The notes beneath the pieces are model-generated. The model was not told the DNA's origin. It saw nothing but the letters and a program-made list of their open reading frames with translations, and did no database searches. Made by a program: the position numbers and the translations under genes. 64,000 nucleotides of DNA from Bugula neritina (Eukaryota > Animalia > Bryozoa), in assembly GCA_964035545.1 (NCBI GenBank), contig OZ037767.1, positions 24,134,628 through 24,198,627 of the forward strand. The letters are read 5' to 3'. Shown piece by piece: positions 3,634-53,000 of this stretch (its first letter is position 1; each line of letters opens with the position of its first letter).

Positions 3634-5271
3634 TTATGAATTTAGTTTCTTATTGCCAAAAGAAACTAATGCAGAAGTAAACATTAATAACTATTAACTG
3701 CTAAGAAAACCTAATCGTTCTTAATCTTATCTATATTATTGTTTTATATTACTAAATTTAAGTGTGTCAGAATAAATCAGCATTTGAAAGTAATTTAGGT
3801 AAACATGATTGCCTATCTCACATCCATCTTGCATGTCTACATAGACAGCTGACATTTTTCTTATAGTCAGCTGTTTACCATAAAGTTAGAAACACTTGCT
3901 TATGTTTGAGGAATAGAAAATATTGAACTTTATGTAATTTCTTATTGTCAGAAGTATTCATGATATTGGTTATTCAATTTGAAGATAGAGATTTACTTTC
4001 AAATACAAACAATAAAGAAGAAATGAAATAATGAAGTAAATCTGTATTATTTATAAAACAACTCATGCAAATTTATAGTCACTATCCCCGTGAAAATCCC
4101 TGATAGAAAGAGTTTCTTGAAGTAGGCTAAGGACTTATTCAGATGAGGCACAAGAGCAATTATGACTGAATGCTCTTCCTAACATCATCTTGTGGCCTCG
4201 TGATTACTAGGCTCCCATATGCTATTATTTATAGTTGTGAACAAATTAAAAATACTCAACATAAACACATATGCTATAGGCTTATAGAAAATACTGAGAA
4301 ACTTAAATTTAAAATCTTTTAATGTAAAACAAGCCATTCTGAATAGAGAAAGGAGGTTCAATCTCCTCAAAACTACACATACTGTGCAGAGCACCAACCT
4401 TTCACACTAACAATTATTGAATTTAACGAAAGCTAAACAATCTTTGTATCATATTAAATAGAATACTTATGTTCATATAGCAAGTGTTACTAATGTGTTT
4501 TCTTCTAAAAATGTTTTTCTAATTGATGTATATACATGTATAATATAACATAATTCATCAATAATGTGAGAGTCAGTGGTGTTATTAGGATCAAATATTG
4601 GGTCAATCACTTTACTTTATTTATAATATGCACTGAATATAATGGGCGAACATTATAAAATCTAGCTTCTAATATATATCTGTTTTTTCCTTAAACGAAT
4701 GGAATGTAAAAAAATTTAAATAAATACATTAGTCTCAGAAATCTGCGTATAGGTATTGTAAACCTTGCCTCAGTCTTTTTTCATACATGCTCGAAATTAG
4801 TTCAAGAAAGTAAACTAATTGGCAGATTTACATGAATTTTGAACCAATTTCACTCTTTGGTTTTAATGTGCTGGCGTGTACTAAATAAAGTAAAATAACC
4901 CATATATAATATTGATTTAAAGTTCTGTCACAATATTATCTTTAGACAGTTAGAGTCAGTGAACTGAATAAATATGACATAGCTTAAAGTAGGCTAGAAA
5001 CACAAGTCAATAACATTGGTATAAAATGTTGGCATGCCATATACTGCATATTGGAAAAATTGTGACTTAAGCATTGATGTACTAGGTATAGATCGTCTTT
5101 AATCAAACCTTAGTTTGATTTTGTAGTGTTTAATCTAGTTTCTAAGCATCTGGAGATGTTTTTGTTGGCTACTATTATTACTGAAAAACCGTTATTTTGT
5201 TATAACGAAATGGCTTCTATCAGTTGCTCTATGTTCCATTTTTGATTTTAGTTTTGGCAACAAAATTGCTA

Positions 5272-14900: not shown

Positions 14901-15346
14901 GGTTAAATGTAAGGCAGGCTATTTTCTTCTGGCAACTGAATATAATGACTTGATAAGTAAATTAAAAAATATTAGAACTTATGTGAAAGCTGTTACCAAG
15001 TATATATTGTACAAGGTACATGTTATAGTTGTATTATATAAAAAAATATTGTAGCTTGCAGTTGTAGAAGTTATCTTACCTTTCTTGTGATGAACATTCC
15101 GGCAGTAACAGCTGGATTAATATGGCCGCCGGAAACATTTGCTAAAAGCCAGACTAAAGTGGCGACTGAAAGGCCGAATGAAAGGCTGATCCTAACATGA
15201 TCTAATTCTTTAAGTCCATAAACACTGCTGCAGGCAACAAACACGAGGAATGCAACTCCCAACATTTCTCCAAGCAGTGCCTTGTAAAACGCGCCAGATT
15301 TGAGATCCTGGACGGAGCTTTCGAAAAACCTGCTGTAAATACCCAT
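11904..15346 (-). CDS. Aquaporin B (AQP4-like, second NPA is NTA), 5 coding exons
   Basis: Exons 15346-15080, 14843-14696, 14049-13874, 13713-13566, 12022-11904 join in frame. Motifs: [30 protein letters not shown]. Acidic tail [39 protein letters not shown]. Confidence 0.93.
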
Positions 15347-17324
15347 CTTCTGTTTTTTACTTCTTTTCTGCAAAATAAAGAGATGGAACATGAAATTAGG
15401 AGTTTTAACGAGGCAATGGAACCTTATGTGACACAAGAACCAATGTAGTAGCTTAGTTAATGTAAGAAAATACAGCTTTGTTACAGCCATCATTGACCAC
15501 AGCTACCCACAGAAAAAACCATTTGCACTAAAAGTAATAAAATTTTTATCTTTATACTCTTTTCATCTTCCCAGTATTATAAATGGCATTTCGATATTTT
15601 GAATTTTACATACAGTGCGAGTTATAGCTTGAGGCCATGCTGAGTATAGAGATAATAATTTGATCTGCACCGTAGAGAGCAAACTATTAGTTTGTTATGC
15701 AGAGTGCTCTATGCTTTCTAATTACATATACTGACGTGGTGATTGAAACCATAGAAGATAACTGTGAAGATGGGTGTGCATAATGTGTTTTCGTTGGAAT
15801 ACCAACTGCAGATGCAAACACTTCCAATGTAATTATGACACTAACATAATATTATAGCAACGCTTTAATGCAAATATATTTATACAATGTGACTGCATGC
15901 AATAATCTAAGGGGTGTAAATTTTTGCCAACTTGGTTTCCATAAACATTGTGCTCTGTTTACTGATGAGGTATGGCAAGTGTAAGGTTATTTGTTGTAAC
16001 AACATGTCAAGGTCAGGGGGCAGCTTGCAGATTATATACATTATAGACACTACGCTAAATAGATACTCAGTGTAAACACCGTAGGTTGATAAACAAGTTA
16101 GTAGTATATACACTGTGGGACAGTAGACAAAAAGGATGTAGCATACCATTAGGTGTATTTATGAGGTAGATAATTGATGTGAATTAGATACCACAAACAA
16201 ACACGATGAATAGCGTCTCAATTAATAGATATGCTAGATATATATTTGTGTTATTGTTTGTATCTATTATTCTATTCATGAGCAGGCTGTATAAAGAACT
16301 GTCTTTTTGTAAAATCATCAAAATATTGTTGAAAAAACCCTTTCAATAAGTTGCATTTCAGTGGTAAGCGTGAATTTTACTGCAAGGAAGCCTAGGCCTG
16401 TAAGCAGATCCTATAGCTGGTAGCAATAGACTAAGACATCAGCCAGACAAATGTAAAGTACTGGTTGGGGTGGGTGAATTAAGGTGCCCTCACTACACTA
16501 CATACTACTATCACAATACCATACAACAAAGCTACAAGAATAGACGAAACTACCTGAACTCTAGACACACTTACAACACACCAAGTATTATACAAAACAA
16601 GGCAATGAATGTTCACCCTGCTGTCACCTTTGAATATCCACCCTGATCTATAAATTTATCTGTTTCCATTGGAGAATCCCCAGAGATGTCTTGTAGATCT
16701 GCCATGCTAGAGAGAAGGTCAGAGCTTTACCTAGCACACAAACACACACTTAGCCTGGTTTGACTGTGATAACAGGTTGCTGTCATGTGATGGGCCGTAG
16801 AAGGCGTATTATTGACACAACATCTATCAGTTTTCACACCATTAACTCACCAGGGTTATAGAATAAGATATGAGAGATTAGTGCAGTGGTAAAGATGGTA
16901 AATACCACAATAAACCAATACAGCGAGAGTAAAATGGAAGAACAGGGGAGGCAAAGACTAACACTAAGCGAAAGCAAAAGCTGAAGCAAAATATTTATTT
17001 GAATAACTATAAGTATAAGGGTTGCTAAAGGAAGGTAAGCGGAAGAAAAGATGTGTAAAAATGTATATCAAGCTGTATAACAATAATAGCTGTATGCTCA
17101 TCTTATAAAGTCTGGAAATTATGTCTCTAAAGTTTTGATTATGGTAGTCAGAAAACATTTTAAAAGTGAAAATTTAAGGATAATTTTTTTTAATATCGCA
17201 CTAATAATAAATTGTCATTGCTATTATCTATATTTTACACTTACTACATACAAGTGAAAAAAATATAAATAATTCTTTCGTGTGAAACAACATTATTTAG
17301 GCCAAATTAATTTTCATCAAAAAT

Positions 17325-17490: not shown

Positions 17491-18057
17491 GCTTCCTTCA
17501 TTCTACAAAACTCTTACATTTATCATTACTGTATTTCCCCTTTTAATAGCCCATGCTTTGATGGCCTCTAACAAATTTTACTGTATCTCTTCATTTAACA
17601 ACATGCGTTTTTAAGCAGTTTATTAGAGCTCTGTTATACAAAGGATTACAAAACTTTTTTGAATAATGTAATATAAAGTCATATTATAAGTTTGCAAAAT
17701 ATTTGATATCTGTCTATTGCTGTGGCAATAGCAGTTCAGAGTAAGGTCATGTAAACAATGGGTGACTAACAGTTGCACTAACATAACCATTGATCTAAGT
17801 TTCTTCATTGCTTATGGTAGATCACTTTAGAGAAAATTGAAATTATCAGTTATTACAAAAATTATTACATCAGATGATTTTATTAGTGTACATGGCATCC
17901 GGCATTTTTATTGGACTGTGTTATCTTTCGAGTTATGTGGTATGAGAAACAATTCTACTTCTGCTTGATATTCAGACATACACTTTAGCATTAATTAAGC
18001 ATTTTCAACCCACCATTCAATAAATTTGATCAAGTGCATATGCAATTAGTCTACAAA

Positions 18058-18560
18058 ACCATTATATACCACCTCCTTATACTGCGCTCTATACCACCAC
18101 TCTGTACCGCCACTCTGTATCACGACTCTATCCCACCACTCCATACCACCACTCTATACCACCATTCTGTATCACGACTCTATACTACCACTCTATACCA
18201 CCACTCTATATCACCACTCTATCCCACCACTCCATACCACCACTCTATACCACCATTCTGTATCACCACTCTATACTACCACTTTATACCACCACTCTAT
18301 ACCACAACTTTATACCACCACTCTATACCACAATTTTATACCGCCACTTTATAACACCACTTTATACCGCCACTCTATACCACCACTCTGTATCACCACG
18401 CTATATACCACTACTTTGTACCACCACTCTGTACCACCACTCTGTACCACCACTCTTGATCACCACTCTATACCACCACTCTGTACCACCACTCTTTATT
18501 ACCACTCTATACTACCACTCTGTACAACCACTCTTTATTACCACTTTATACCACCACCAC
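18058..18560. repeat. ~13-bp minisatellite (TACCACCACTCTA)
   Basis: Dozens of degenerate tandem copies. Confidence 0.9.
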
Positions 18561-31964: not shown

Positions 31965-34377
31965 TTACCAGTAACTCTTCTGGCAGAGAGACGAAATCGG
32001 TGTACTTGCTGCACACTTCTTTGAACGAAAACTAGAATCTCTTTTATCTATCTTCATGCAGTCATCATCGATGCGAAAATGCTTCATACTAGCGTAAGCC
32101 ATGTTTACTGGAGAGTTGTCGTCCCACATAAACACATCTTCCTTTCTGTAGCCCCCAAGTAAGATGAACTTAGCATTCCAGTCTAAAGTAGGAAATAGAA
32201 TCAAATGTCCCTGCTACCCACAAAGTACACTATTTCCTAAGTCTTAGCTATGAATACATATAACAGCTAATGGTCCTTGCTCTGTCAACACTTGCTAGTA
32301 TGGTGGAAGTAGTATTAGCAGCAGCAAAAGCAACAGTAGTAGTGAATAAACATTAACTTTGCTAAAACCAAATTATTTTCTCACTGTTTGCAACCATAAT
32401 TATTGCTGTTTGCCAAAAAAGTATTTTCACTGAGTATATATCAAGTGAAATGGAAAATATTTTGACTGCATGTGCTTTACAAAATCTGTGTTAGTTTAGC
32501 AGTAGTGGGGGGATAGAATATCATAGTAACCATCATGTTAAAACTGTATTTACTATCCACTCAATGGCACTATGTAATACTTGCTGAAGATCAACCAGGG
32601 TTTAACACTGCATATTACATGCAATATACATGTGCTATACAGTGTGAATAATTGTTGTGCAAAAGTTGAAATAAACCTGTAGTGTTGGCCCAAAAATCAA
32701 TTAACCAGCTCCTGGATTGGGTGGTCTTCAGCATTGCCAGTGTTCCACCTTTCATCTCACAGTTCAACTGAGCAACAGCATGATGCAACAATTTCTGTTC
32801 AAACCAGAAGCACTGGCCACTTGCAGGGTTTCGGATCCATCCATCATCACACTGAGGAGTTTCTGCAAGTATAAATGTACCGTCTTACTGCACTCAAGCT
32901 ATTTTATTTCAAGTTACTATAATGCATATGAAAATACACACGGACTAGTATACTTCCTTTTGCAAGTTTTTATATATGTTTTCTTGCAATAAATCTAACT
33001 ATTATGATTATTTCAACTCAATTGACCTTTTAATTATAAAGTTTGGAGTAGCTTTTGTTATACAATATATTTATTCTCACCACAGCCTATTACCTGCAAA
33101 CACTCAGGTTTTAAATCTTCTATACTTTTATACTATGCATTTTAAATAAATATTAAAACTATTATAGCTAAAATGTTTGAATTTTAATCAATTAGTTGTG
33201 AATGTGTTTCTATTGTTACAAGGATGTGCTACTTTTGTTTTACATAAGTATTACCTTTTCTATACAGATAAATGTTTTACCTTTGTTATACATTAAGTAG
33301 CCATAGCTGGCTGAGGAGTTAGCTATGTCAACAGAAAGGTGTGTTGAGAGTTGGCAAACTTTAGAATTAGCTGAGATGTTGACAGCAAATGCTTCACACT
33401 TCCTGCTGCTCAGACACAAAGCAGCGCACTCTATTCTACTTGCTGCCGAGACATTGACATACACATCCAACAACTTTCCACTTTTGGCCAAGACAAAGTT
33501 TTCTGTTATTTCTGCTTTTCCCAACTAGAAAAAGAGCACAGTTTAAATAACTAGCCTGCAGTTCTGAGTAATATAAACTGTTTGCACTACAGTAAAAAAC
33601 AATCAATATATAGTATTTTCTCTTTAAAAAGTAAAGTCGCAGGGAATTTTATTTGTCCTGTAAAATGTTATTTATATCTTTATGAATTTCTGGCAGCTCT
33701 CAATTTACCAATAACCTACATGTGATATTTTAGTGATATGTTTGTTATAATTGTTACATATTGAGACACTCCACTGTGTCGTTAAGTGAAACACCCTTTA
33801 AATATTGCAGAAGCTCAATAAAAATGTAAAATGTTTTTTCTAACAGGAAAGTGATCAAGTTGCGTGTTACATGCATCAGTGAAAAATAGCATGGAATGAA
33901 AATTTCCAATAATTACTAGTAGTTTTGAAATACCGCATAATTTAGAACCGACTGGAAACGTCATGTGCAAGTGAACAGAAATTTCCAATTATTTCAGCAC
34001 ATAGGTGCATAAAATTTATTATAAAACAAAGCTGTTTAAGGATACAACTTTAAAAAAGTATTTAGATTGATTGATTTATTTATTTATTGCATATCACAGA
34101 TATGAAAACATGTTGCAAAATTCAATGTAAATATAGGCCTACTGGCATTAATAACTAGACATGGACAAAAGTAAAAAAAAAATTCAGAGCTCTGTATAAG
34201 ATTATTTAAAATAAAAAAAAAAATATATATATATAATCTCACAACGGATTTTCAAGCAGTTGGACCTGCAGCAAATCCGGGTATAGTGTGGCCCTACGTT
34301 GCCTGGTAGCTTACCTTCAATGAGTGAATCCCTAATATAGCTGGAACCAGACAGTGTAATACCAATGAAAATTTCAT
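31965..34377 (-). CDS. Secreted PAN/apple domain + C-type lectin-like domain protein, 236 aa, 4 exons
   Basis: Exons: 34377-34315 (signal-peptide-like MKFSLVLHCLVPAILGIHSLK); 33524-33281 (PAN pattern ECAALCLSSRKCEAF...CQL); 32862-32677 (CDDGWIRNPASGQCFWF...AQLNCEMKGGTLAML); 32182-31965 (FILLGG...FMWDDNSPV...DCMKI...KKC...LCQK). Phases 0,1,1 are compatible. Confidence 0.88.
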
Positions 34378-40265: not shown

Positions 40266-40969
40266 ACATGAACTGTATTTTCAAGTGTTATAATATTTTT
40301 TTATGAATAATATTGAAATATATGTTGTGATTTGCATAGCATGAATATTATATTTTATTTAATAACCATTTTCCACTTTCAACTGCAAATGGGCAAAGCA
40401 TGATAGGTAAACAAGAACCTGAAATTTTTATGTCAAGTTTAGCTGCAAGCATCGAGCTGCTTTCAGGAGTTACTGATAAAACAGGCAAGCCCTTGTATTG
40501 TCCTAATTTAGTATGCCATAGAATATTGTAAGCCGCAGCCTATAGTTTCTACATATTAACTAAACTCTAAATAAAATTCATTTCATGTATTTGTTTTAAA
40601 TTTATTCTTATGCACTCTGGTCAGCCTGCTTAACATCCATCTATGAACAAATTGAAGGGTGCAAATAAAAAGTAAGTTTGACAAATTGGGTTAAATGAGT
40701 CATATATACAAATATTATTCTTTAGAGAATTTCTTCAAAGTTAATGCAAAACAAAATTTAGCTTACTGCAATACATAATATAATCTACCGAATTAGTAAT
40801 TATTAGTATATATTCAGTTGAGCAATGATGAAAATTAGCCAATAAAAACAGTGTTTACAAAAGCAAGGGTGTGCTGCAAGTATACATATAGTTGGAAATT
40901 GTGAAACTGGAATATGTAAAGTGAAAAGGAAAATATTTATTTAAAGCAATTAAAGTAGCAACATAAAAT

Positions 40970-41030
40970 TTAATAGATTGAATAATTAATGTTTTCTAGA
41001 CAAAGTGAGAAATATCCTCCAAAACATCCC
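40970..41030 (-). CDS. Alternative distal terminal exon 14B of the micro-exon gene
   Basis: Same acceptor (GGTTACAG|G) and phase as exon 14A. Encodes (K)GCFGGYFSLCLENINYSIY*, with its own AATAAA at 40941-40936. Confidence 0.7.
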
Positions 41031-42246
41031 CTGTAACCATAACAACACAACGAAGTATTAAACAGACTACTACAGTATAGAGATGATAATATTACACTAT
41101 AATTCATATTCATTGAGCTGTCAGATACAAACTCATTCAGTGGAGTTTTGTGCACTTGATTTGCAAAGGCTCTCAGTTATAATACAGTCACATGCATCAT
41201 TCTATTATTGTCTTTCCACTTTAATTTATTTTGTATGAACCTTTAACTAAAAATACATTTCCTTCTTAGCCCAGGTTCATTAGTTTCATTTAGTAAAAAA
41301 TTATGTTGAGTTATGAAGACAGATTTGAGGTTTGGCACTAATCCTGTTGGGGTTTTTTGTGTTTTTAAATAACATATCAGTAAAGTAATTCAGTTATATG
41401 AATTCAGTTTTCAATATTTTTTGATGATGTTAATATTTTATTTTAATATTGAAATTGAAAAATTTAGTAAAATTACAACTTGATATTTTTAAGGAATTGC
41501 AATGATTTTTCCTTATTTTTTGAACATACATTATATACCACACTGGTATCACGCTGTATATCACTGAGCTGGAATAGACCAGTAATTGAGTTCATTGCTG
41601 TATATGTGCAAACCCATTACAACAACTAACAGTCGATTCGCTGTATTGCAGTACTAACTACAAATCCACAATAGGTAAAAGTAATCGAACACCACTCTAA
41701 TGCATCTACAGCTGAATGCATAGCCTATATAGGTATAAGTCTCTAAGAAATACCCCGCATGCAGTATAACCCCAATATGTTGTATTTCTTTACACAAGAG
41801 TAATTATTATATGATTGTTTTGCTAGTGCAGCTTATAATGGCAGGGTCTGCATTATTGTTTACTTGATATAAGTACTCAAAAAATATGATATTTTAAATT
41901 AAGCTAAAATTGGAAATTTTGCACCTTTGTATTTCTACAAACAGAATAACTCTTGAAAGCAAACAGATGGTGAGTCAGATGTGTTTCAGTCATGAGATTT
42001 AGTTTGGAGAAAAGTTCTGAGAAAAACATAGCTTACTAATCGGGTGGTTGTGACTTCGAGCCTTACTGATGCTCACACCATATAGCCAGAAGAGCAGCAG
42101 GGTGGCATTAGAAGTCATGACTCTTGCGGTCTTGATGTGATAGCAGAGAAATAGCTTCTCTAGCAAGCTATGACTATGTCAGTAAACATCTTGGCCAGGT
42201 AAAAGAATTTTCTAAGTGACAGATCAGCCTTATTTCAAAAGACAAT

Positions 42247-42254
42247 CACACACA

Positions 42255-42342
<88 letters not shown>

Positions 42343-42366
42343 CACACGCACAAACACACACACACA
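42247..42366. repeat. (GCAC)n / (CA)n microsatellite between the duplicated last-exon blocks
   Basis: Direct tandem repeat. Confidence 0.95.
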
Positions 42367-42657
42367 TATATATATACACATGTGCATAGTAGTCAAAGCT
42401 AGTCACATCCAAATATTATTATTCTTTAGAGCTTTTCTGGAGAACAAAATTCAACAAGTTGCAATAAACAAGAGAATTTATGGAATTTGTATTTACTAAA
42501 ATATTATTCAGTTCAATTATGATGAATATCAGCCAATGAGAACAGTGGTTACAAGAGCAGGTGTGTGCTGTAAGTCTACAAACAGTTAGAAATAATAAAA
42601 CTGGATTGTGCAAAGCGAAGAGTAAAATATTTATTTAGAAACAATGTAAAATAAAAT

Positions 42658-43548
42658 TTAGTAAATTGCGTAGCTTATCTCTTTCATCCCGAGGGAGAAT
42701 TCTCCAAAACATCCCCTGTAACCATAACAACACAACTGAGTATATTTATCAGACTACTGTACAGTATAGAGATGATAATATTACACTATTCTTAACATTC
42801 CTTGAGCTGTCAGATACAAACTCATTCAGTGGAGTTTTGTGCGCTTGATATGTAAAGACTCTCATACAGTTATAATACAATCACATGCATAAGATTCTAT
42901 TGCTGTCTTTCTTTCTATTTTGTATGAACCTTTAACTAAAAATACATTTCTTAGCTCCTTAGCCTAGGTTCACCAGTTTCGTTCAGTATAAAAACATGTT
43001 GAGTTATCAGGACAGTTTCGAGGTTTGGCACTAATCCTGTTGTGGTTTGTGTGTTTTAAATAACATATCAGTTGAGTAATCCAGTTAGATGAGCTCAGAT
43101 TTCCATATATTTTGAATAAGTTAACATTTCATATTGATGGCTAGGTCTGTAGGTTGTTGCTCGTATTACAACTTTTTCTTTCTACTACAAATTGACAGAT
43201 CTAAAGAATAACATATGAGTAAATCTTACTTTCTAGCCTTCTTAACACCCTTCTTCTTCCCATTAGCCATCTTTTCGTCAAATTCAACTCTTTTCTCGAC
43301 TCTAAAAATCCGTTTATCTCAATGACGGCTTAAAATTAGAGACGTAAAGAAAATACTGCTTATTAATTGATTACAGTTTTCAAAATCAAATTCTATAATT
43401 ACCCTCCACAACTTTTGATTTCTTCGTCTGTGTTGACCCCTCTGTCTTTCTGTTGCACTTTGTTCTCATTCATCAAACTTCAAACACACAACAACTAATA
43501 TTTATAAATCTCATATTACTTTGTTATGTATTATTATATAATTCAAAG

Positions 43549-43634
<86 letters not shown>

Positions 43635-46600
43635 GTGTGTGTGCGTGCAGCATTGAAATATTAGGGAACACATAATAGATAGCAAAATATTTTTTAAAAT
43701 ATTACCTTGACACTTTCCACTCATACCAGTCCTGTATAAAATATAGAGAGCATCTATTACACTACTTCATCTACATGGTGTATGCATATAATTCAGAGAC
43801 AAAGTTGGCCTCAATTGAAAAATATGTTCGGATGTGCAGATAACAATAGTGGCATTTTCAGAACAGGTCAGATAAATACAATATAGAACTGTCCTATTTT
43901 ATGAACATATGAGGTTTTTCAGTGACACAAAAATCTAGCACATTACCTCATATGCATTCTATTATGTGACTAGCTAGCTAGTATAGTCACTTACAGGACT
44001 GCTAAGTGGGCAACAACTTTCTATAACAGCAACTAAAAGTCAGCTACAATTATAAATCAAATGAAAAGTTAACAGCAACAAACATACCTTAACCTGCTGC
44101 AGATAGTTAACCTGAGCCTTCAGTCTGAGAAACAATAAACAAGAGAAGACAATTAACTCGGACAAATTATTATATACCTATCACACACATGTTTATAACA
44201 GCATTGTAAACACTTTCATATATTTATATTTTTTTGGATGAATTAAGTTTCAAGCTCACCCTTTGCTCTCTTGTTTCATTCCTTTGACGTAGTTTTTGCC
44301 GATAGCCAGCTCAATCTTATTCCTCTGCAAAACACAAGTTATAATACAAATAGATAACAAACATTAATAGATGGTTGCAGTTAGTTTTGTAGTACATGAA
44401 GAGTGATCAGTGATCAGAATGTAACAAAGTAGTAAGTTGATAATTTGTCATTAGGATAAATCACTTGGTATATGAAATGTGGCATATAGATATGTTAGAT
44501 GGAGTAATTAGGTGAACGAGAGAATGTGATGTCCATGTAGTCAGCAGTGTTAGCTAAATACCATGACTCATAGACCCAGTCTCAAAAGTTAAACACTTTT
44601 ACTTACCATTAATCTCTTTTCATCTTGCTCCTTTGTTCTGTAGCAAAAATTAGAAACAAGATAAAACTTATTTTAGTGACAGAAAATTCAAAATATTATT
44701 AAAGCATATATACTGACAATGTTGTAAATACCTTGATTCATTTTATTTTCAACAATGCAAGTAGCTTTGGTAAAATCTAAAAGCTGTAATATTTTCAATT
44801 TAAGAAGTTTCACAAAGTCATAGGGGTAGCCAAAACATTCTAGCAATCTAGAAATTTAAATAGCTCAGGTTTCAAATGTTGCACAAAATTAGAGCCAATA
44901 AGCATTTCATAGTTGAATGTTGAATGCTGTTTTTAGTTGATTCTACTTGCTGCATCTCTAAATTATTATCTACCAGAGTGAGTATACCAACCTATATAAC
45001 TACTTTTGTATTACTCAAAAACATGACTTCACAAGCTTTATGAATAAACATTTTCAAAATCAAACATAGAAACTAATCGCAAACATCGGTTTTTGACTCA
45101 AGATCACAGATTTGAGCTGCCATATAGTGACAAATTTAATAGTTTTTACCAGTTTGCTTCAACACTGTCTAGACTTTCACCTGTTGAGTTAATTATATAA
45201 AACTTTTACACTTTTAATACAAACACAACTAGTGTTGTTATTGAAAATCTACAACTTACTCTTCCCACTTGGCTTTCTCTTTTTCATTTGCCAAAATGGC
45301 TTCGGACATCTCCGAGTTCGTCTTGGCACTATAAAAATTAAGATATTTGTAAATACCTATAGCAAAGAATAGTAGACGTGGTCTACACATTCAACTTGAG
45401 CAGTTGATATACGTTGAGATAGAAAAGTTTAGCAGGAATTATTACGATTGGGAACTGAAATGCATGAAAAACTCATTATTTTAAAACTGCAACTTGTTTA
45501 AAATTGATCCCACCACCTATAGGCAAGGCTAATTCAATCCGTTATAAAATTACTATTCAATAAGAACTTCACGTACCAATTGAACCTATTTTTAGAATGT
45601 TATAATAACTTACAGGGAATCTCTCTCCTCCATCATCTCAGCTTTCAGCTAAAAACGGTAAAAGATAAACAATAATATTTTAAGATTTGTAACAGAATAA
45701 CCTAAAATAGCACAATACTACAACTGCAGCTGGTGGACAATTGTTATCTCAGGTAATTTGATAATTAATGAAACCTCATAATAATCCTGTTTTGATATGA
45801 ATTCAATTTATTCACATTATTTACAAACATTAGTTTGAAAAAGTTTTATACCAGCAACTAATATAGCAGCCAGGCACAACTAATTATGAATAGCATTTTT
45901 ACCTCATTTATCTTCAAAGTAAAAAGCTTTTTTGTAATTTATTTAACACTAGTAGCACCGCCTATACTTGCAATAGTAGAAATTTTAAATAGAAGTAAAT
46001 ATTCTAGACTCACCAATTCCATCTCTCTCTCAGCACAGCGCAACCTGAAAAATGCTCACAGTATGAAATTTTAGCCAATAGAAGTACAGGCACAACAGAC
46101 AATAATAATTAACATTAGCTTTGGCAGAATAGTTAAGTTGCTACCCAAAACATTAAACAAATGGAGGTCTGTTCATTTCAGTCTGCAGTAACATACACAA
46201 TTAAATAAAGCCCTCTTCAATTTTAGTAAAGAAATATAGTTGTTGCACTATAATATGCTAATTCAACAAATAACTGGATATCATTCAATATTTTTATAAG
46301 CAGCTATATAGCTCTATGTTATGTTTTCAAGCATCTAGCAAATATACTAAATTCTTTTAAATATTCCAAAGACAAAAGACACCAATTGTATACATACAAA
46401 CCCTGTTTTTTTCAACATATGCACATGAATACTTTTTATCTAAATAACCAACTTACTTCTTGTCACCGAAAAAAAATTACCCCCACTGCGATTCAAACCC
46501 GATACCTCTGGCTTGCAAACAACATGGACTACCTGGTAATCACAACACTACACCCCACCCACTTCACATGAACTCCACTGGCCTCTCTACTACTCCTTCA

Positions 46601-48033
46601 GTCATCAGGTTATACTTACTTGTTCTTCAGTTCTTCATTTTCCATCTAAGAAAAGCAAGAGGAAGTTACACTAAAGTAAATACAATAAATTATTACAGAT
46701 TTAAACTCTTTTCTTGAACTGTTTTAAGTTTTCAACAAGGATTGCACACACCTATAGTATGTATATATATAAGATGCATGTAGTTAGTTGTGACTAAAGA
46801 TCTTATAAGTCTTGAGTTGTCTGGAGAACTTATTTTAATCTACAAACCTGCCATATCAAAACACAAGCAGTTATTGTTCTTAAATTGACATTAAAATTAT
46901 ATTATTTCATATCATATAATATAATTTTTTAATTGTCAAATGAGTAATAATTATAGATAAGTCAAAAATTCATTGCGGCATACAGATAACATATAATTTT
47001 TATTAGGACTTACTTTCATAAGATCTTTCTCCCTCTCCATCTCCTTCTCCATCTCTCTGTGCCATTTGAAAAGGAAATAACAGAAATTAATATTGAAAGC
47101 ATGGACACCGAATTAACACACCAATAGGCCTCACAGGGTTTAGTAAAACCTACTCTCTGTTTGCTGTCAGAATATATTTGAGTGAGAATCTTTCACAGTT
47201 TTTCCATGACATTAGGCTTTTAGACAAACAAGTGTTGAAAAAATTTAAAAACAACATATTTTATTCTCAATACGTGATATAATAATATATATTCTACTAC
47301 AAAAGAGATCAGTATCACTATATGATATGTTCTGTATTCAAATATAGCAGCACTCATGATATCACTTCAGCATATGTTAACCAGTCACTGCTTCTTACGG
47401 AAGAGAAATTACTTACCCACATTCCTCTATCAACCTCTTGTTCTTCTACAAAATCAATGCTAGAAATGTGGTTTGCTATTAATTTATTCTAACAATATAC
47501 AACAAGCTCTGCTATTAAGTAGCTTCCTTTCTCAAAAAAGTTTGCACTTTTTAATATGTCACACTGATACTTTCTGAAGAGCAAGAAGCATGAACAAAAG
47601 GTGAGGTGTTTGTGATGAAAATAGTAACAGTCTGCTATATAATGCAGTGCAGAAAGTATAGTGCATGTAAAAATATTATTGCCATAATTTGCAACTGAAA
47701 AATGTTTTATGCAATACACCAGAAAATGTTACCTCTATATTAGGTATGCTAATTAAGATTTAAATTATTTTGCTATTACTTACCACCCACAGATAAACAC
47801 ATATGAGCTCGCAAACAACTGAAAATAAAAAAAGCCCAACCCTTACTTTGCAATATAATGAAATTACAGAACTATTTTCATATGTTCCTAAGCTATGCAG
47901 TGTATTAGCGATAAAAAACAAGTTAAGGCAGCATGAATGAAATATGTTGAAGAAACAAAGATATCAAAGTCCAGTTAAAATACTCACCTAAAGCAGCAAA
48001 TAGAATAATTGCAATTATCAAAGTCTCACTCAT
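42658..48033 (-). CDS. Micro-exon gene: uncharacterised N-terminal transmembrane + coiled-coil protein, 207 aa, 14 exons (isoform with proximal last exon 14A)
   Basis: Exons 48033-47988, 47818-47784, 47445-47417, 47056-47014, 46645-46620, 46044-46014, 45648-45614, 45328-45260, 44637-44607, 44324-44260, 44124-44088, 43449-43403, 43301-43230, 42715-42658. All introns are GT-AG, all phases are compatible, and there are no internal stops. Protein: MSETLIIAIILFAALVVCELICVYLWVKNKRLIEECGEMEKEMEREKDLMKMENEELKNKLRCAEREMELLKAEMMEERDSLAKTNSEMSEAILANEKEKAKWEETKEQDEKRLMRNKIELAIGKNYVKGMKQESKGLKAQVNYLQQVKKDRGVNTDEEIKSCGGVEKRVEFDEKMANGKKKGVKKARKGCFGEFSLGMKEISYAIY*. Confidence 0.85.
43551..43630. repeat. (TA)n microsatellite
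   Basis: Uninterrupted TA run. Confidence 0.95.
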
Positions 48034-50068
48034 TTTTTCAAAACAGCAAATATAGTAACTAGGTACACCATATAATTATGTAGAAGTAGAAGAATTTCTT
48101 TGAGTTAAACAATCCAATCATAATTATTTATGTAACAATCATAAGCCTTAGTTTTGAAAACTTAACACAATTATGTAAAAATTTTTATTGCTGATTGTTG
48201 CATTTTATAGAATGTTTTTATTATAAGTTTATTCCCACAGGCTAAATATTTACTTCCTGTTTCCACAAATAATTAAGGAATGGCTTCAAAATAATATACA
48301 ACTGAAAAAGAGATCATTAATTTATGATATGATAAAGGAACTTCATGATTCTATTGATAATAAATATAATTTTTTACCAAACTTAAATACACTTGAAGAC
48401 TGTTTAACAGAAAAAGATTCAACCTTACGTAAGAATTAATTGGGCTAAAAACTCACATGCAGTGAAAGGAAAATAATGATTTGTTAACATTAGCAGAGCC
48501 TGTCAGAGCAAAACAAATACAATAACTTGATATCTACTCATTGACAAGATGAAAGTAACTAAAATATATGATAATAGAAAGAAATCTCTACGGAAAAATA
48601 GGAGATGCAAGCAAAGAGCATAGATATAATGATGTCACATGATTTAGTGATTGTTAACAAATTGCTTTATTTTTGAAGATGCCATGCATTGTCAACTTTG
48701 ACAGATTAATGCTGTAAAATGTAAACTTTAATCAGAGAGAAGAAAACATAAATGTATTGTTTGGAGACAAGAGCTAACAAAAGCAATAACAATAAAAAGC
48801 TGCTGTACAGTACAGATATGAAGAAAGATATTATATGTGGGTTTCTTTCTGCAGGCACACAGCATCCATATGGGATTATTATAGCAACTAATAAAATCTC
48901 TGAAAGCTTCCAAGTGTCACATTGTGTGTTGGCAATTTTGCCAAGAAAGCGATGTACATAAGTGTGCATGAGGCTTGGTTTTAAAAAAAGATTTATTTAA
49001 AAATCGTGAAATGAAGCACTTATGAAATGTCGTGTACATACCAAATGAGTTATTAAGGCAAGATGCTTACTGATGGTTACTGTTGATTCCTCCAATAATT
49101 AACATAAAAGTTAAGCTCTTGCCATAAAGTGATGGTATTGTCAGACCACATAACACCTTCCCTTATTGCTGGGTGTTTGGGTGCGGCTCTTGAACATTGG
49201 CTATCAATTTTAACAACTTGTTTGCTGGAAGCAAAAGCTGTATGTGTTTTAATATGAATGTTCACATCACAATGAATTCTAATAACCTTTCAACCCCTGA
49301 GATTTGTGCACTGTTGACTGCTTAATTTTTTCCTATATACAAATATATTTGTTTGAAAAGTTGCTTTACTGACGGCAAGTACAGATGGTGAAGTCAAAAC
49401 AATGCATATCAATGTCACTCCTGTCAAGATGTGTTCTCAGTTAAATTTCTACTGAGTTGTTGAGAGTGTGAGTTTACCACAGCTACTGTAAACTCAAGAT
49501 GAACTCGAGGATTGTCTTGGACACCTTTGCAACATATCATGACTTTCAGCTGATATCTACCACGCTATAGCGATATATCATACTCAGCGAGTCATTTTCT
49601 TCTATTTATGGTGTATCACAGTGTTGTATTTTTTTTCAAAATAACTGATTTCTGACTGCATTTTGTTTTCCCTAATGAAGCCTATATTTATAGAGTGAGC
49701 TACACACACACACCCCCACACATCCCCCCCCCACACACACACACAGATTAAACAGAAGTCCTAATATTTATTTACACTAAGCTCCAACCAACTGTAAAGT
49801 GATACTAATCAGGCAAATTTATTTAAATTTGATAATCTGTAATGCAATAACATAACACACAGTGGTTTATAAAATAGCCAATGGAAATGTTTTGATCATT
49901 GGAACATCTTGGAATATATAGTAATTAATAAAGAAACAAAAATGTGTTGAAAAAAAAACAGGAAACACATGAATTGAAGCATAAAATCAAAACTTCATAA
50001 ACTCTTCATCAGCAAGCAATTGTAAAACTTTTACTGCATCACTGTAAACACACCACGAATGTCTACAT

Positions 50069-53000
50069 TTAGTACTCTACGGGAGTAGTGTATCGTCTCC
50101 ACATGTAACTCCAGACAGAGGCTGCATGCTCGACCTTTAATACTTCCGGCAAGGTAGGCAAGCTGTCTAACACACTGTCCCAGTATGCACTGTCATCTTC
50201 CACCATGTAGTACTGCCACTGGATGAAAGAGGTTAGTGCTGCCTGCAAACTGCAACAGAAATTTAAAATAAATAAAGTGAAACAAAACTTGAGCAATCAT
50301 AGTAATGTTCTAATTATATTTAACCATCTTTTCATACTTATGGAAAGCATTATTCTGAAAGGTGTAATATACATACTTCACGGCTTTTCTCATAATATTA
50401 ATTTTACTCTGGCATGTTAAAGTTGCACTAAATTAAAATGCGTAAGATTTTTAGTAGTGACCAACATGCATATTATACATAACAAAACAAACTCGTAAGC
50501 CTATACAGTATACTACAAGAAGCGAGCTAAAAAACATGTTAATTAACACCTTAAAGTTTAAACTGTTGAATCTAGAATAAAAAAGGGAGTTGTCTCACCT
50601 CTGGCCAGATTCATTGATTTGGTGACTAGCTGCCTCCCTGTTCAGCTGCAGTGTGATGTATTCAAAGAGTTGCTGCAGCAGCAGCAGAGTTCTAGGGCTA
50701 TTGTATGTACAGATAGCATTCACTTCCTCTTCTAATCCCTCTGACATGTCACTTACGTAGCTCACGCCCATGGCATCAAATGGTTTCTATGGCAACAGAG
50801 CATGCTCAACATTAGTTTGTGTAGACTGTAGAGTCATGCACCCATTCAATAGCTTCACAAGGCTTTATTCTTCAGTCTAGATTTACTAGTATTTAGAAAT
50901 GTATTGCCATTAGAAAGTGTGATGCTCATTAAAATAAGTTTCATTATCACACGTCTTTAACAATACAAAAAGTTATATATTTAGACTCAACTTTAAAGTA
51001 TGCAAAACCACAACTCCAATTGCTAACAACTACTTTGTCTACAATACCATACATGTAATAAATCTAATGAATAGTTTAATATCCCAGACTTTCAGCGTAC
51101 CTGGTGATTGGCCATAAGGCAGGAGGCCTGAGAAAACTTTATCAACACCCAAACGTGGAGCACATGCTTCAGTTTAACTTCATCCGACAGGTGCATTGAG
51201 GCCGAGCCAATAGTTTGCTTGAGGAAACCTTGTAGTCTTTCTTCAAGGTCATATTCAGGCATCACATATAGATAGTTCATCACTGTGTTCAGTTCTTTAA
51301 TGTTGGAGGTAAGAGTTTTGATAGATCTACTGCTATGAGCCGTGATGTAATTCTCTAAATCCCTACTTAGTCGTTCCTACAACACAGTTATTAGTCTCAT
51401 CACTGTATTATATACAGAAAGCCAACAGTTGCACTTTCTTCATGTGACTACAGTACCTACTCATCACCTCAAAGTGAATTTCACAAATCATTTTTATTAC
51501 TAGTAGATAACAGCTAGCTTACTACATTTTAAAAATACACCCACTTTTTAAATTCTTTTAGAAATAACAGCATATTAGCAACTTTATTACCTACTTTTAT
51601 CTATTGAAGTTATATGATTTATTTGTACAACTGATACTCCTTGCATGTTTAAATTTTGTATCTTAATTATTTCTATTTACAAATATAAATATCAAACTAT
51701 TTTTCAAATTTCAATGAGACCTGGTTAAAATTACCATTTAGTTTTAGCAACCATTTAATTAGGATTTGACATGAAATCAAAACATTGACTAGGCCAGAGA
51801 GAATAGTTTCATCTAGCCAGCGTAGTTACCCTCACTACTGTAACAGTCTTTTTAGTAAAGTTATGCTAACCTGTTTTGGTCGCAGTATATCAATTTGACT
51901 CCACATATTGAAATCCTCTTTAAAAACAAAAGAAAGTGCATTGAACTCTTCAGAGCCAGCTTTAATTTTAGCCTTAGCTCCGGCATATTTGAGTCGCATA
52001 TCGTGCTCTACATTGTGTAAGTTATAGTTGACATGAGTCTCAGTGTCAAGCTGATACTCGGTATGAGAGGTGATAAGGCTAATGACATCCTCCAAACTGC
52101 TGACACTTGCTAACAGGTACTTGGTGATGTCAGTGACAGGCACTGCAGGTCTACAAGCATAATAGATAAACACTTCAGTTAACTTAGAAAAGACTCTACG
52201 GTAATGAGAAGTTTTAAACAGTTCTAATATAATAGTGACATTTGACAATATATTTTATCCTTGCAGCTGCAAAATATTTCACAAACTAGCAGGACAATAA
52301 ATTAACAATGTTCATGCTCACACTTGTACAGGGTATATAGGGTACAAGCATCATTTCAAAAACTTGTTTCTAATAGTTGTTATAGTCTAACCCAAACTTT
52401 AAATAGATACAATGTACTGTGGAACAGTAAATAGTTTCTGAAAATTATTTTTCATTTCAACTTAAAAATATAAATGTGGAGAACCCATTCAATTCTTTTT
52501 CCTCTCGAGCCAAGAGAATAGAAAACATATTTAGTTTTCAGTAACGTTTATGTAAAAAATATTGTTAGTATTAATTGTTCAGTAAATTAATGACCAAAAA
52601 TGAGAAGAATTCATCTTTCAGGCCAACTGTTCTCCATCACTACTCATGGTGTTACACTTGTAAAAAATAAATGGAAGTTGTCTTACCTATGCTGATCAAA
52701 TTGAGAGATGACAGAGTTGTGGGCATCAGAAAGGTAAGATATTAGCTGCCGTACATGACAGTTGACCCCTCTATGCTTGTCTAGGAGCAGCTCTATCAGC
52801 AGAGGGTCTTCTGGTAGCTGATCCACATCAGCATATGCAACTAAAACAAAGTGTGACTGTTTACACTTTGTTGTCCCGTTTGATATACAAACACTAGCTT
52901 AAAATTATTTATTGTAAAAAATAATTCTTATATCGTTAGGAAAAACTTAAAAATATCAGCTATACAACATAAACATAACATTTCAAGTGTTACGGCTCTA

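Follow-up and report, generated by a model that had tools for sequence, protein, structure and literature searches.

In a 64,000-nucleotide stretch of chromosome 3 (C3) of the bryozoan Bugula neritina (24,134,628-24,198,627; hereafter the window), positions 48033..42658 of the minus strand carry 14 very short exons that very probably make up a real coding gene. We regard this gene, on balance, as a member of a small, fast-diversifying family of membrane-anchored helical proteins, a family that would diversify by exon divergence, segment exchange and exon duplication while retaining its reading frame, its splice sites and its physicochemical layout. That a multi-exon protein-coding gene lies hidden here had been proposed in an initial annotation of the window, and the strongest evidence for it is that the whole exon structure is conserved in two paralogues, referred to below as A and B. 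A gene that is invisible to open reading frame (ORF) scans was in this way validated through paralogues in which the exon sequence changes but the frame, the intron phases and the splice sites do not.

Conservation of the exon structure in paralogous copies

The genome searched comprises 216,009,554 bases in 321 sequences; the published assembly is described as 216.00 Mb in 320 scaffolds plus the mitochondrion, with 9 chromosomes (PMC11480708). A DNA search of this assembly with the gene revealed three further loci on the same chromosome, all four loci lying within 520 kb, and with the DNA, exon 8 (as 22 amino acids) and exon 10 (as 21 amino acids) as queries, these four were the only family loci found genome-wide. 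Paralogue A (chromosome 3, 23.973-23.979 Mb, plus strand) has 14 exons and an intact 200-amino-acid frame, and paralogue B (24.240-24.247 Mb, 24240677-24246743, minus strand) has 14 exons and an intact frame of 208 amino acids. Copy C (24.489-24.493 Mb) is partial and looks degenerate. Judged by these copies, the family is small and apparently young, with three intact members, including the reference gene of the window, and one degenerate one.

When the reference exons were projected onto paralogues A and B, 13 of 13 GT and 13 of 13 AG dinucleotides were found to be kept in each, and all 13 intron phases were unchanged. Given the divergence of the introns, the probability that all 52 splice-dinucleotide bases remain unchanged is about 0.005 for A and about 0.003 for B. 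In paralogue A the start codon has been relocated (TTG to ATG, together with a 3-nt insertion) with the frame kept. Exon lengths have changed by 3, 12, 3 and 3 nt, which are multiples of three in four cases out of four, as against 20-27% of the intron indels.

The substitutions are consistent with the same constraint. We simulated neutral change by placing on the exons as many substitutions as were observed there, drawn from the spectrum seen in introns. Between the reference and A, where differences amount to 0.115 in exons and 0.097 in introns, the neutral probability of finding no stop codon is 0.020, and 37 amino-acid changes were counted against 47.9±3.4 expected. The corresponding values are 0.165, 0.104 and 0.005 for the reference and B, with 48 changes against 67.8±4.0, and 0.217, 0.156 and 0.002 for A and B, with 60 changes against 82.1±4.3. 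Amino-acid changes are thus fewer than the neutral expectation in all three pairs of copies (P<=0.001 by simulation). The ratio of nonsynonymous to synonymous divergence (dN/dS, Nei-Gojobori) is 0.32-0.40, and third codon positions are more changed than first and second positions in two of the three pairwise comparisons. Since the paralogues keep frame, phases and splice dinucleotides, since amino-acid changes are depleted and since exon indels come in multiples of three, the reading frame and the splice sites are under selection.

The gene model in the window

Rebuilt from the window sequence, the 14 exons (in order 46, 35, 29, 43, 26, 31, 35, 69, 31, 65, 37, 47, 72 and 58 nt) sum to 624 nt and join into 207 codons followed by TAA. 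The exon sizes, GT donors, YAG acceptors and 207-amino-acid ORF of the initial annotation were thereby reproduced exactly, and its statement that the ORF track holds no meaningful hit was borne out, as no ORF of at least 90 amino acids lies within the 42658-48033 stretch. All 13 donors begin with GT; nine are GTAAGT- or GTGAGT-like (GTRAGT), and the others read GTGAGC, GTATGT, GTAATT and GTAAGA. YAG is present at every intron with a pyrimidine tract before it, the pyrimidine content 5' of the model acceptors being 0.68 compared with 0.44 over all AGs. The hexamer GTRAGT occurs 11 times on the gene strand of the region, nine of these occurrences being model donors, and twice on the opposite strand; its background across the window is 0.36-0.58 per kb. 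The exons have a GC content of 0.415 (introns: 0.297) and are purine-rich on the gene strand, and an AATAAA lies 23 nt past the stop codon, at 42635-42630. One argument made earlier for the model, that a stop-free chain of this kind would be unlikely by chance, had to be given up. Between 48033 and 42600 there are 450 alternative AG/GT chains with the identical 14 exon sizes that are also stop-free, so that the open chain by itself is weak proof of a gene.

All exons are on the minus strand. Exon 1 (47988-48033) carries the ATG and the first half of a hydrophobic segment, and is 100% identical in paralogue B. The second half of that segment, with a C-x3-C motif and LWV, is encoded by exon 2 (47784-47818), the splice sites of which are kept in paralogue A, and the basic KNKR cluster, which is stop-transfer-like, by exon 3 (47417-47445). 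With exon 4 (47014-47056), which has an in-frame 12-nt deletion in paralogue A, an E/K/M-rich helix begins. It is followed by exon 5 (46620-46645), exon 6 (46014-46044), which encodes Cys63, exon 7 (45614-45648), present also in the partial copy C, and the two exons used as genome queries, exon 8 (45260-45328) and exon 10 (44260-44324), the latter matching twice in copy C. Exons 9 (44607-44637) and 11 (44088-44124) are kept in paralogues A and B. Exon 12 (43403-43449) is also 47 nt long in paralogue B, with the same phase, about 60% DNA identity and an open frame. The polybasic patch is encoded by exon 13 (43230-43301), whose counterpart in B has 75 nt (+3), 48% DNA identity and an open frame, and exon 14 (42658-42715) supplies the G-C-F-G...I-Y tail and the TAA.

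Exon 5 adjoins an interspersed repeat in intron 5 (window 46470-46611), of which at least 40 copies exist genome-wide and which gives a large depth spike in a mapped run of DNA contigs. By eye this short repeat looked tRNA-like, a reading that is not supported, as neither ARAGORN nor Rfam calls it. ARAGORN found no tRNA, and Rfam, applied to 40500-49000, gave nothing at the gathering score and only weak matches on simple repeats.

Predicted protein and membrane topology

Protein features were computed locally from the spliced model, using Kyte-Doolittle (KD) hydropathy in 19-residue windows, charge and heptads. There is one hydrophobic segment of transmembrane grade, at the N-terminus (residues ~5-27), with a KD(19) maximum of 3.16 at residues 5-23 in the reference, 2.99 at residues 1-19 in A and 3.16 at residues 5-23 in B; outside the N-terminus the values do not exceed 0.53. 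Four residues precede the segment (one in paralogue A), and KNKR (KYKR in A) follows it directly. All three intact copies are without proline and without an N-x-S/T sequon, 37-40% of their residues are charged, and their cysteines are mostly conserved. Each also has a basic patch with a net charge of +7 in the 16 residues before G-C-F-G, which is maintained in paralogue B although its exon 13 is 48% identical in DNA; in the reference the polybasic stretch is KKKGVKKARK, followed by Cys. Conserved elements of the tail are G-C-F-G, F-S-L and the final I-Y.

The architecture outlined in the initial annotation (hydrophobic residues 5-27, KNKR, an E/K/M-rich region, KKKGVKKARK, Cys and a short tail) is therefore present. 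Its description of the E/K/M-rich region as coiled-coil-like stands in part: a proline-free, charged, helical middle is kept in the paralogues, but the heptad periodicity is only moderate.

The positive-inside rule, a short N-terminus and the example of P450-type signal anchors are established guides to topology. Because the N-terminus has only four residues, because KNKR or KYKR follows the segment and because no N-x-S/T sequon occurs in the three copies, the N-terminus would be an uncleaved signal anchor that leaves a helical rod in the cytosol, an arrangement that we consider likely. The rod would dimerise, and the basic patch together with the Cys would bind reversibly to an acidic membrane as a second point of contact; we put forward this combination tentatively and with considerable doubt. 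The result would be a short tether or scaffold, the tail of which could be swapped by means of alternative last exons. The membrane-anchored helical architecture is supported by properties of the sequence; the tether function is putative, as is a link to immunity.

Several observations weigh against this picture. The heptad signal is moderate and patchy, with a 3.5-residue periodicity above background only near residues 22-70 and 120-150 and a best a/d register that is 53% hydrophobic. The tail, with a mean KD of 0.46-0.78 and with E, K and D among its last 18 residues, is too polar for a second anchor. We considered an amphipathic helix for the tail and rejected it, its hydrophobic moment not being above that of shuffled sequences (P ~0.1-0.27). 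The conserved tail Cys lies 17 residues from the C-terminus (18 in the duplicated last exon described below) and is for that reason no CaaX site; a polybasic-CaaX lipid anchor of the K-Ras4B type, which would need the Cys to be fourth from the C-terminus, was accordingly discarded. Furthermore, dN roughly matches the divergence seen in aligned introns, so that the constraint on the residues themselves is light. The sequencing run that was mapped proved to consist of DNA contigs: introns are covered, and the joints do not fall at the model junctions. Many of those pieces that match at 90-95% are probably the paralogues. Lastly, family, fold, topology and oligomeric state are all inferred from composition alone.

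Exon divergence, mosaic copies and the duplicated unit

In places, the exons have diverged more than the introns beside them. Exon 2 is 63% identical between the reference and A, compared with 82-87% in the flanking introns, and exon 10 is 78% identical between the reference and B, compared with 89-93% in the introns next to it. We rejected the stronger proposition that exons evolve faster than the synonymous-neutral rate. As divergence at four-fold sites (0.11-0.21) is not clearly above that of introns (0.10-0.16), we limit the claim to exon divergence being equal to or greater than intron divergence.

The similarity among copies is mosaic. Over the stretch from exon 1 through intron 5 the reference resembles B closely and is distant from A; exon 8 is 99% alike in A and B but different in the reference; intron 9 through exon 13 of the reference are close to A and distant from B; and its exon 14 and 3' flank once more resemble B. 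This pattern points to segment exchange between family copies 60-200 kb apart. Exons that diverge at least as much as introns under coding constraint, in copies that are mosaics of one another, offer a case in which gene conversion can be set against diversification in micro-exon genes.

The duplicated unit begins about 640 bp 5' of the ATG and ends a few hundred bp beyond the stop codon. The ~640 bp of upstream sequence common to the three intact copies (48034-48690, minus strand) are presumed to hold the promoter and 5' untranslated region; their 5' homology boundary is sharp (48664-48690), and a block at 48090-48300 is conserved at least as well as the exons. This upstream block also contains a GTGAG donor-like site (~48455) and a tttttcag acceptor-like site (~48303), both kept in the three intact copies, and window positions 48303-48460 may thus comprise a non-coding 5' exon and an intron.

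No counterparts of exons 1-6 and 13 were found in copy C, in which the donor of exon 9 has also been lost (AT). Two tandem 65-nt versions of exon 10 were detected there, at segment positions 4037-4101 and 4213-4277 (minus strand), each with its AG and GT intact. If both versions were spliced in, the frame would be lost, an arrangement known from mutually exclusive exons.

Additional candidate exons

Downstream of exon 14 the reference copy contains a duplicated last exon, E14b (40970-41030, minus strand; 61 nt, +3), which is open and ends in I-Y-stop. Its acceptor context is identical to that of exon 14, it has an AATAAA of its own at 40941-40936, and it is 71% identical to exon 14, compared with 85% for the part of the intron upstream of it. 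The duplication is specific to the reference copy, and E14b is a possible alternative 3' end. Together with the reference/B type and the A/C type, it makes up the third of three tail types in the family. Between exon 14 and E14b lies a (CGTG)n/(TG)n microsatellite (window 42250-42380).

Intron 11 contains a candidate cassette exon of 26 nt, exon 11b (43706-43731, minus strand; cag|GACTGG...CAAG|gtaat). A and B retain both its sequence and its splice-like flanks, and C very nearly does. Inclusion of 11b would shift the frame and, in B, lead to a stop two codons into exon 12. Since exons 12 and 13 of B are open only in the 14-exon frame without 11b, that frame is the conserved one. The same intron holds a (TA)n tract (window 43545-43633), which, like the microsatellite between the two last exons, gives weak spurious miRNA matches in Rfam.

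The RNF213-like neighbour and the surrounding sequence

On the same strand, 5' of the gene, window 60326-60772 matches residues ~4100-4199 of RNF213 (E=6e-8). The initial annotation had placed an RNF213-like gene 2 kb upstream on the same strand; the likeness and the strand were confirmed, while the distance rests on an open frame ending at 50069, a candidate last exon that would put the end of the RNF213-like gene about 2 kb from the ATG. When one RNF213-like exon was used as a query, its relatives were found on C2 and C4, and none near A or C. Paralogue B lies about 42 kb beyond the window end, on the same strand; the RNF213-like gene whose 5' side it flanks is probably the same one. Since minus-strand open frames run on to within about 5 kb of B, the RNF213-like gene may sit between two family copies, the reference on one side and B on the other. 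Four open frames beyond the window, in the direction of paralogue B, gave no PDB match and were blank in Pfam. The reference and B are direct copies about 60 kb apart and ~76-89% identical by segment. If the bracketing is true, two such copies around the RNF213-like gene could promote unequal recombination.

The link to RNF213 is positional only. That lineage-restricted anchored rods, diversified by fast exon divergence, segment exchange and swappable last exons, bracket an RNF213-like immune ligase as an invertebrate counterpart of tetherin-like or adaptor proteins in cell-autonomous immunity seems to us very improbable. Were the gene induced on infection, or found to work with the RNF213-like gene, it would provide an entry point into bryozoan cell-autonomous immunity; with no immune tie, it would be an ordinary lineage-specific gene.

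Near paralogue A, one weak sulfotransferase-like frame was seen. Elsewhere in the window there are an aquaporin (MIP, E=1e-16) exon at 15071-15493 and a PAN/apple-domain exon (E=8e-5) at 33240-33524, both on the minus strand. A 13-nt tandem repeat, CTCTATACCACCA, occupies 18087-18557 in 36 copies with 80% matches; the strongly negative GC skew seen at 18-20 kb is due to it, and a 106-amino-acid open frame on the plus strand (18034-18354) overlaps it.

Alternative explanations

The exons might belong to no functional coding gene at all, being a chance chain, decaying duplicates, or a non-coding host transcript with conserved introns. Exons that are no better conserved than introns, the 450 alternative stop-free chains, and the degenerate copy C, which misses exons 1-6 and 13 and the exon 9 donor, would all fit such an origin. 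However, three copies keep their frames, phases and every splice dinucleotide, stop-free frames have a neutral probability of 0.02-0.002, there are significantly fewer amino-acid changes than expected and every exon indel is a multiple of three, which makes this explanation very unlikely. Its snoRNA-host version has no support, since Rfam shows no family above its threshold within the introns. We give even less credence to the view that the upstream RNF213-like transcript takes in these exons as a 3' extension or as an alternative end. The exons do lie on the same strand, about 2 kb past an open frame that possibly ends that gene, but the duplicated unit, which begins ~640 bp 5' of the conserved ATG, contains no RNF213 sequence; the search with one RNF213-like exon gave no relative near A or C; and every intact copy has a start codon at the beginning of exon 1, which in A has arisen anew at another position.

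One explanation that accepts a coding gene is a secreted precursor. A cleaved signal peptide and an acidic helical pro-region would here be followed by a basic convertase site that frees a C-terminal peptide of 18-19 residues (G-C-F-G...I-Y), and alternative last exons and paralogues would supply different peptides. The basic run stands directly before the most variable, always open part of the protein, for which there are three tail types, and the duplicated last exon has diverged more quickly than the intron upstream of it. Moreover, an A-L-A motif in the middle of the hydrophobic segment of paralogue A is a possible cleavage site, and K-G-C-F-G after a basic run resembles the start of C-type natriuretic peptide. 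Nevertheless, we think a secreted precursor unlikely. At 23-24 residues the hydrophobic stretch is long for a signal peptide, and its second half, together with K-x-K-R, is the best-kept part of the N-terminus; the tail is not cationic, and as three of its four versions are without a second Cys (it is absent in the reference, A and B, and in E14b lies eight residues on), it would form no disulfide ring; and conservation is higher in the helical middle than in the tail, an odd feature for a spacer. It is rather more conceivable, yet still improbable, that the protein belongs to a characterised family that exon-sized queries have missed. Homology searches used pieces of 21-23 amino acids, which are almost powerless, and the gene may already be modelled in the transcript-based Ensembl annotation that exists for the assembly (20,264 genes; PMC11480708). 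Pfam, run exon by exon, gave no match for the three longest exons (at least 20 amino acids each), lengths at which it has little power, and the genome searches returned four loci only. The rapid divergence of the paralogues suggests that the family is lineage-restricted. With an anchored helical protein of this kind, a phylum that has received little study would gain a small family of membrane proteins that diversifies rapidly.

Comparison with known systems

Natriuretic peptide precursors of the C type share with the predicted protein a small size, a hydrophobic N-terminus, and a basic run with K-G-C-F-G near the C-terminus; they differ in having a 17-residue disulfide ring and a D-R-I core. 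Schistosome micro-exon genes (MEGs) are similar in that very short exons hold most of their coding sequence, that there is an N-terminal hydrophobic leader and that the family is fast-evolving and multi-copy. However, schistosome MEG exons are symmetric (multiples of three), so that skipping keeps the frame, whereas here only two of the 14 exons (69 and 72 nt) are multiples of three and the skipping of most single exons would break it.

Tetherin/BST-2, an antiviral membrane tether of vertebrates, is likewise small (~180-210 amino acids), with an N-terminal anchor, a Cys-bearing helical coiled-coil rod, a second membrane device at the C-terminus and fast evolution. Tetherin has a cytoplasmic N-tail of ~20 residues, an extracellular, glycosylated and disulfide-linked rod and a glycosylphosphatidylinositol (GPI) signal. 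In the protein described here, by contrast, the N-tail has four residues (one in A) and the basic cluster follows the segment, which does not agree with a type II topology, the charges around the anchor favouring a cytosolic rod; the three intact paralogues contain no N-x-S/T sequon; and the tail, given its low mean KD and its E, K and D residues, has too much polarity to serve as a GPI signal, which calls for a small omega residue, a spacer and a hydrophobic run of at least 12 residues.

Among ER-plasma-membrane tethers with a polybasic end, STIM1 (in its cytosolic part) and yeast Ist2 also combine a transmembrane anchor, a cytosolic spacer of helical or coiled-coil type and a C-terminal lysine-rich patch able in principle to bind acidic lipids, an analogy of layout only. 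The bryozoan protein is much shorter, is without an EF-SAM or CAD/SOAR domain or a multi-pass channel body, and has an 18-residue Cys-containing tail after its basic patch. With the generic class of N-terminally anchored single-pass proteins it shares an N-terminal segment of transmembrane grade, as found in the KD windows.

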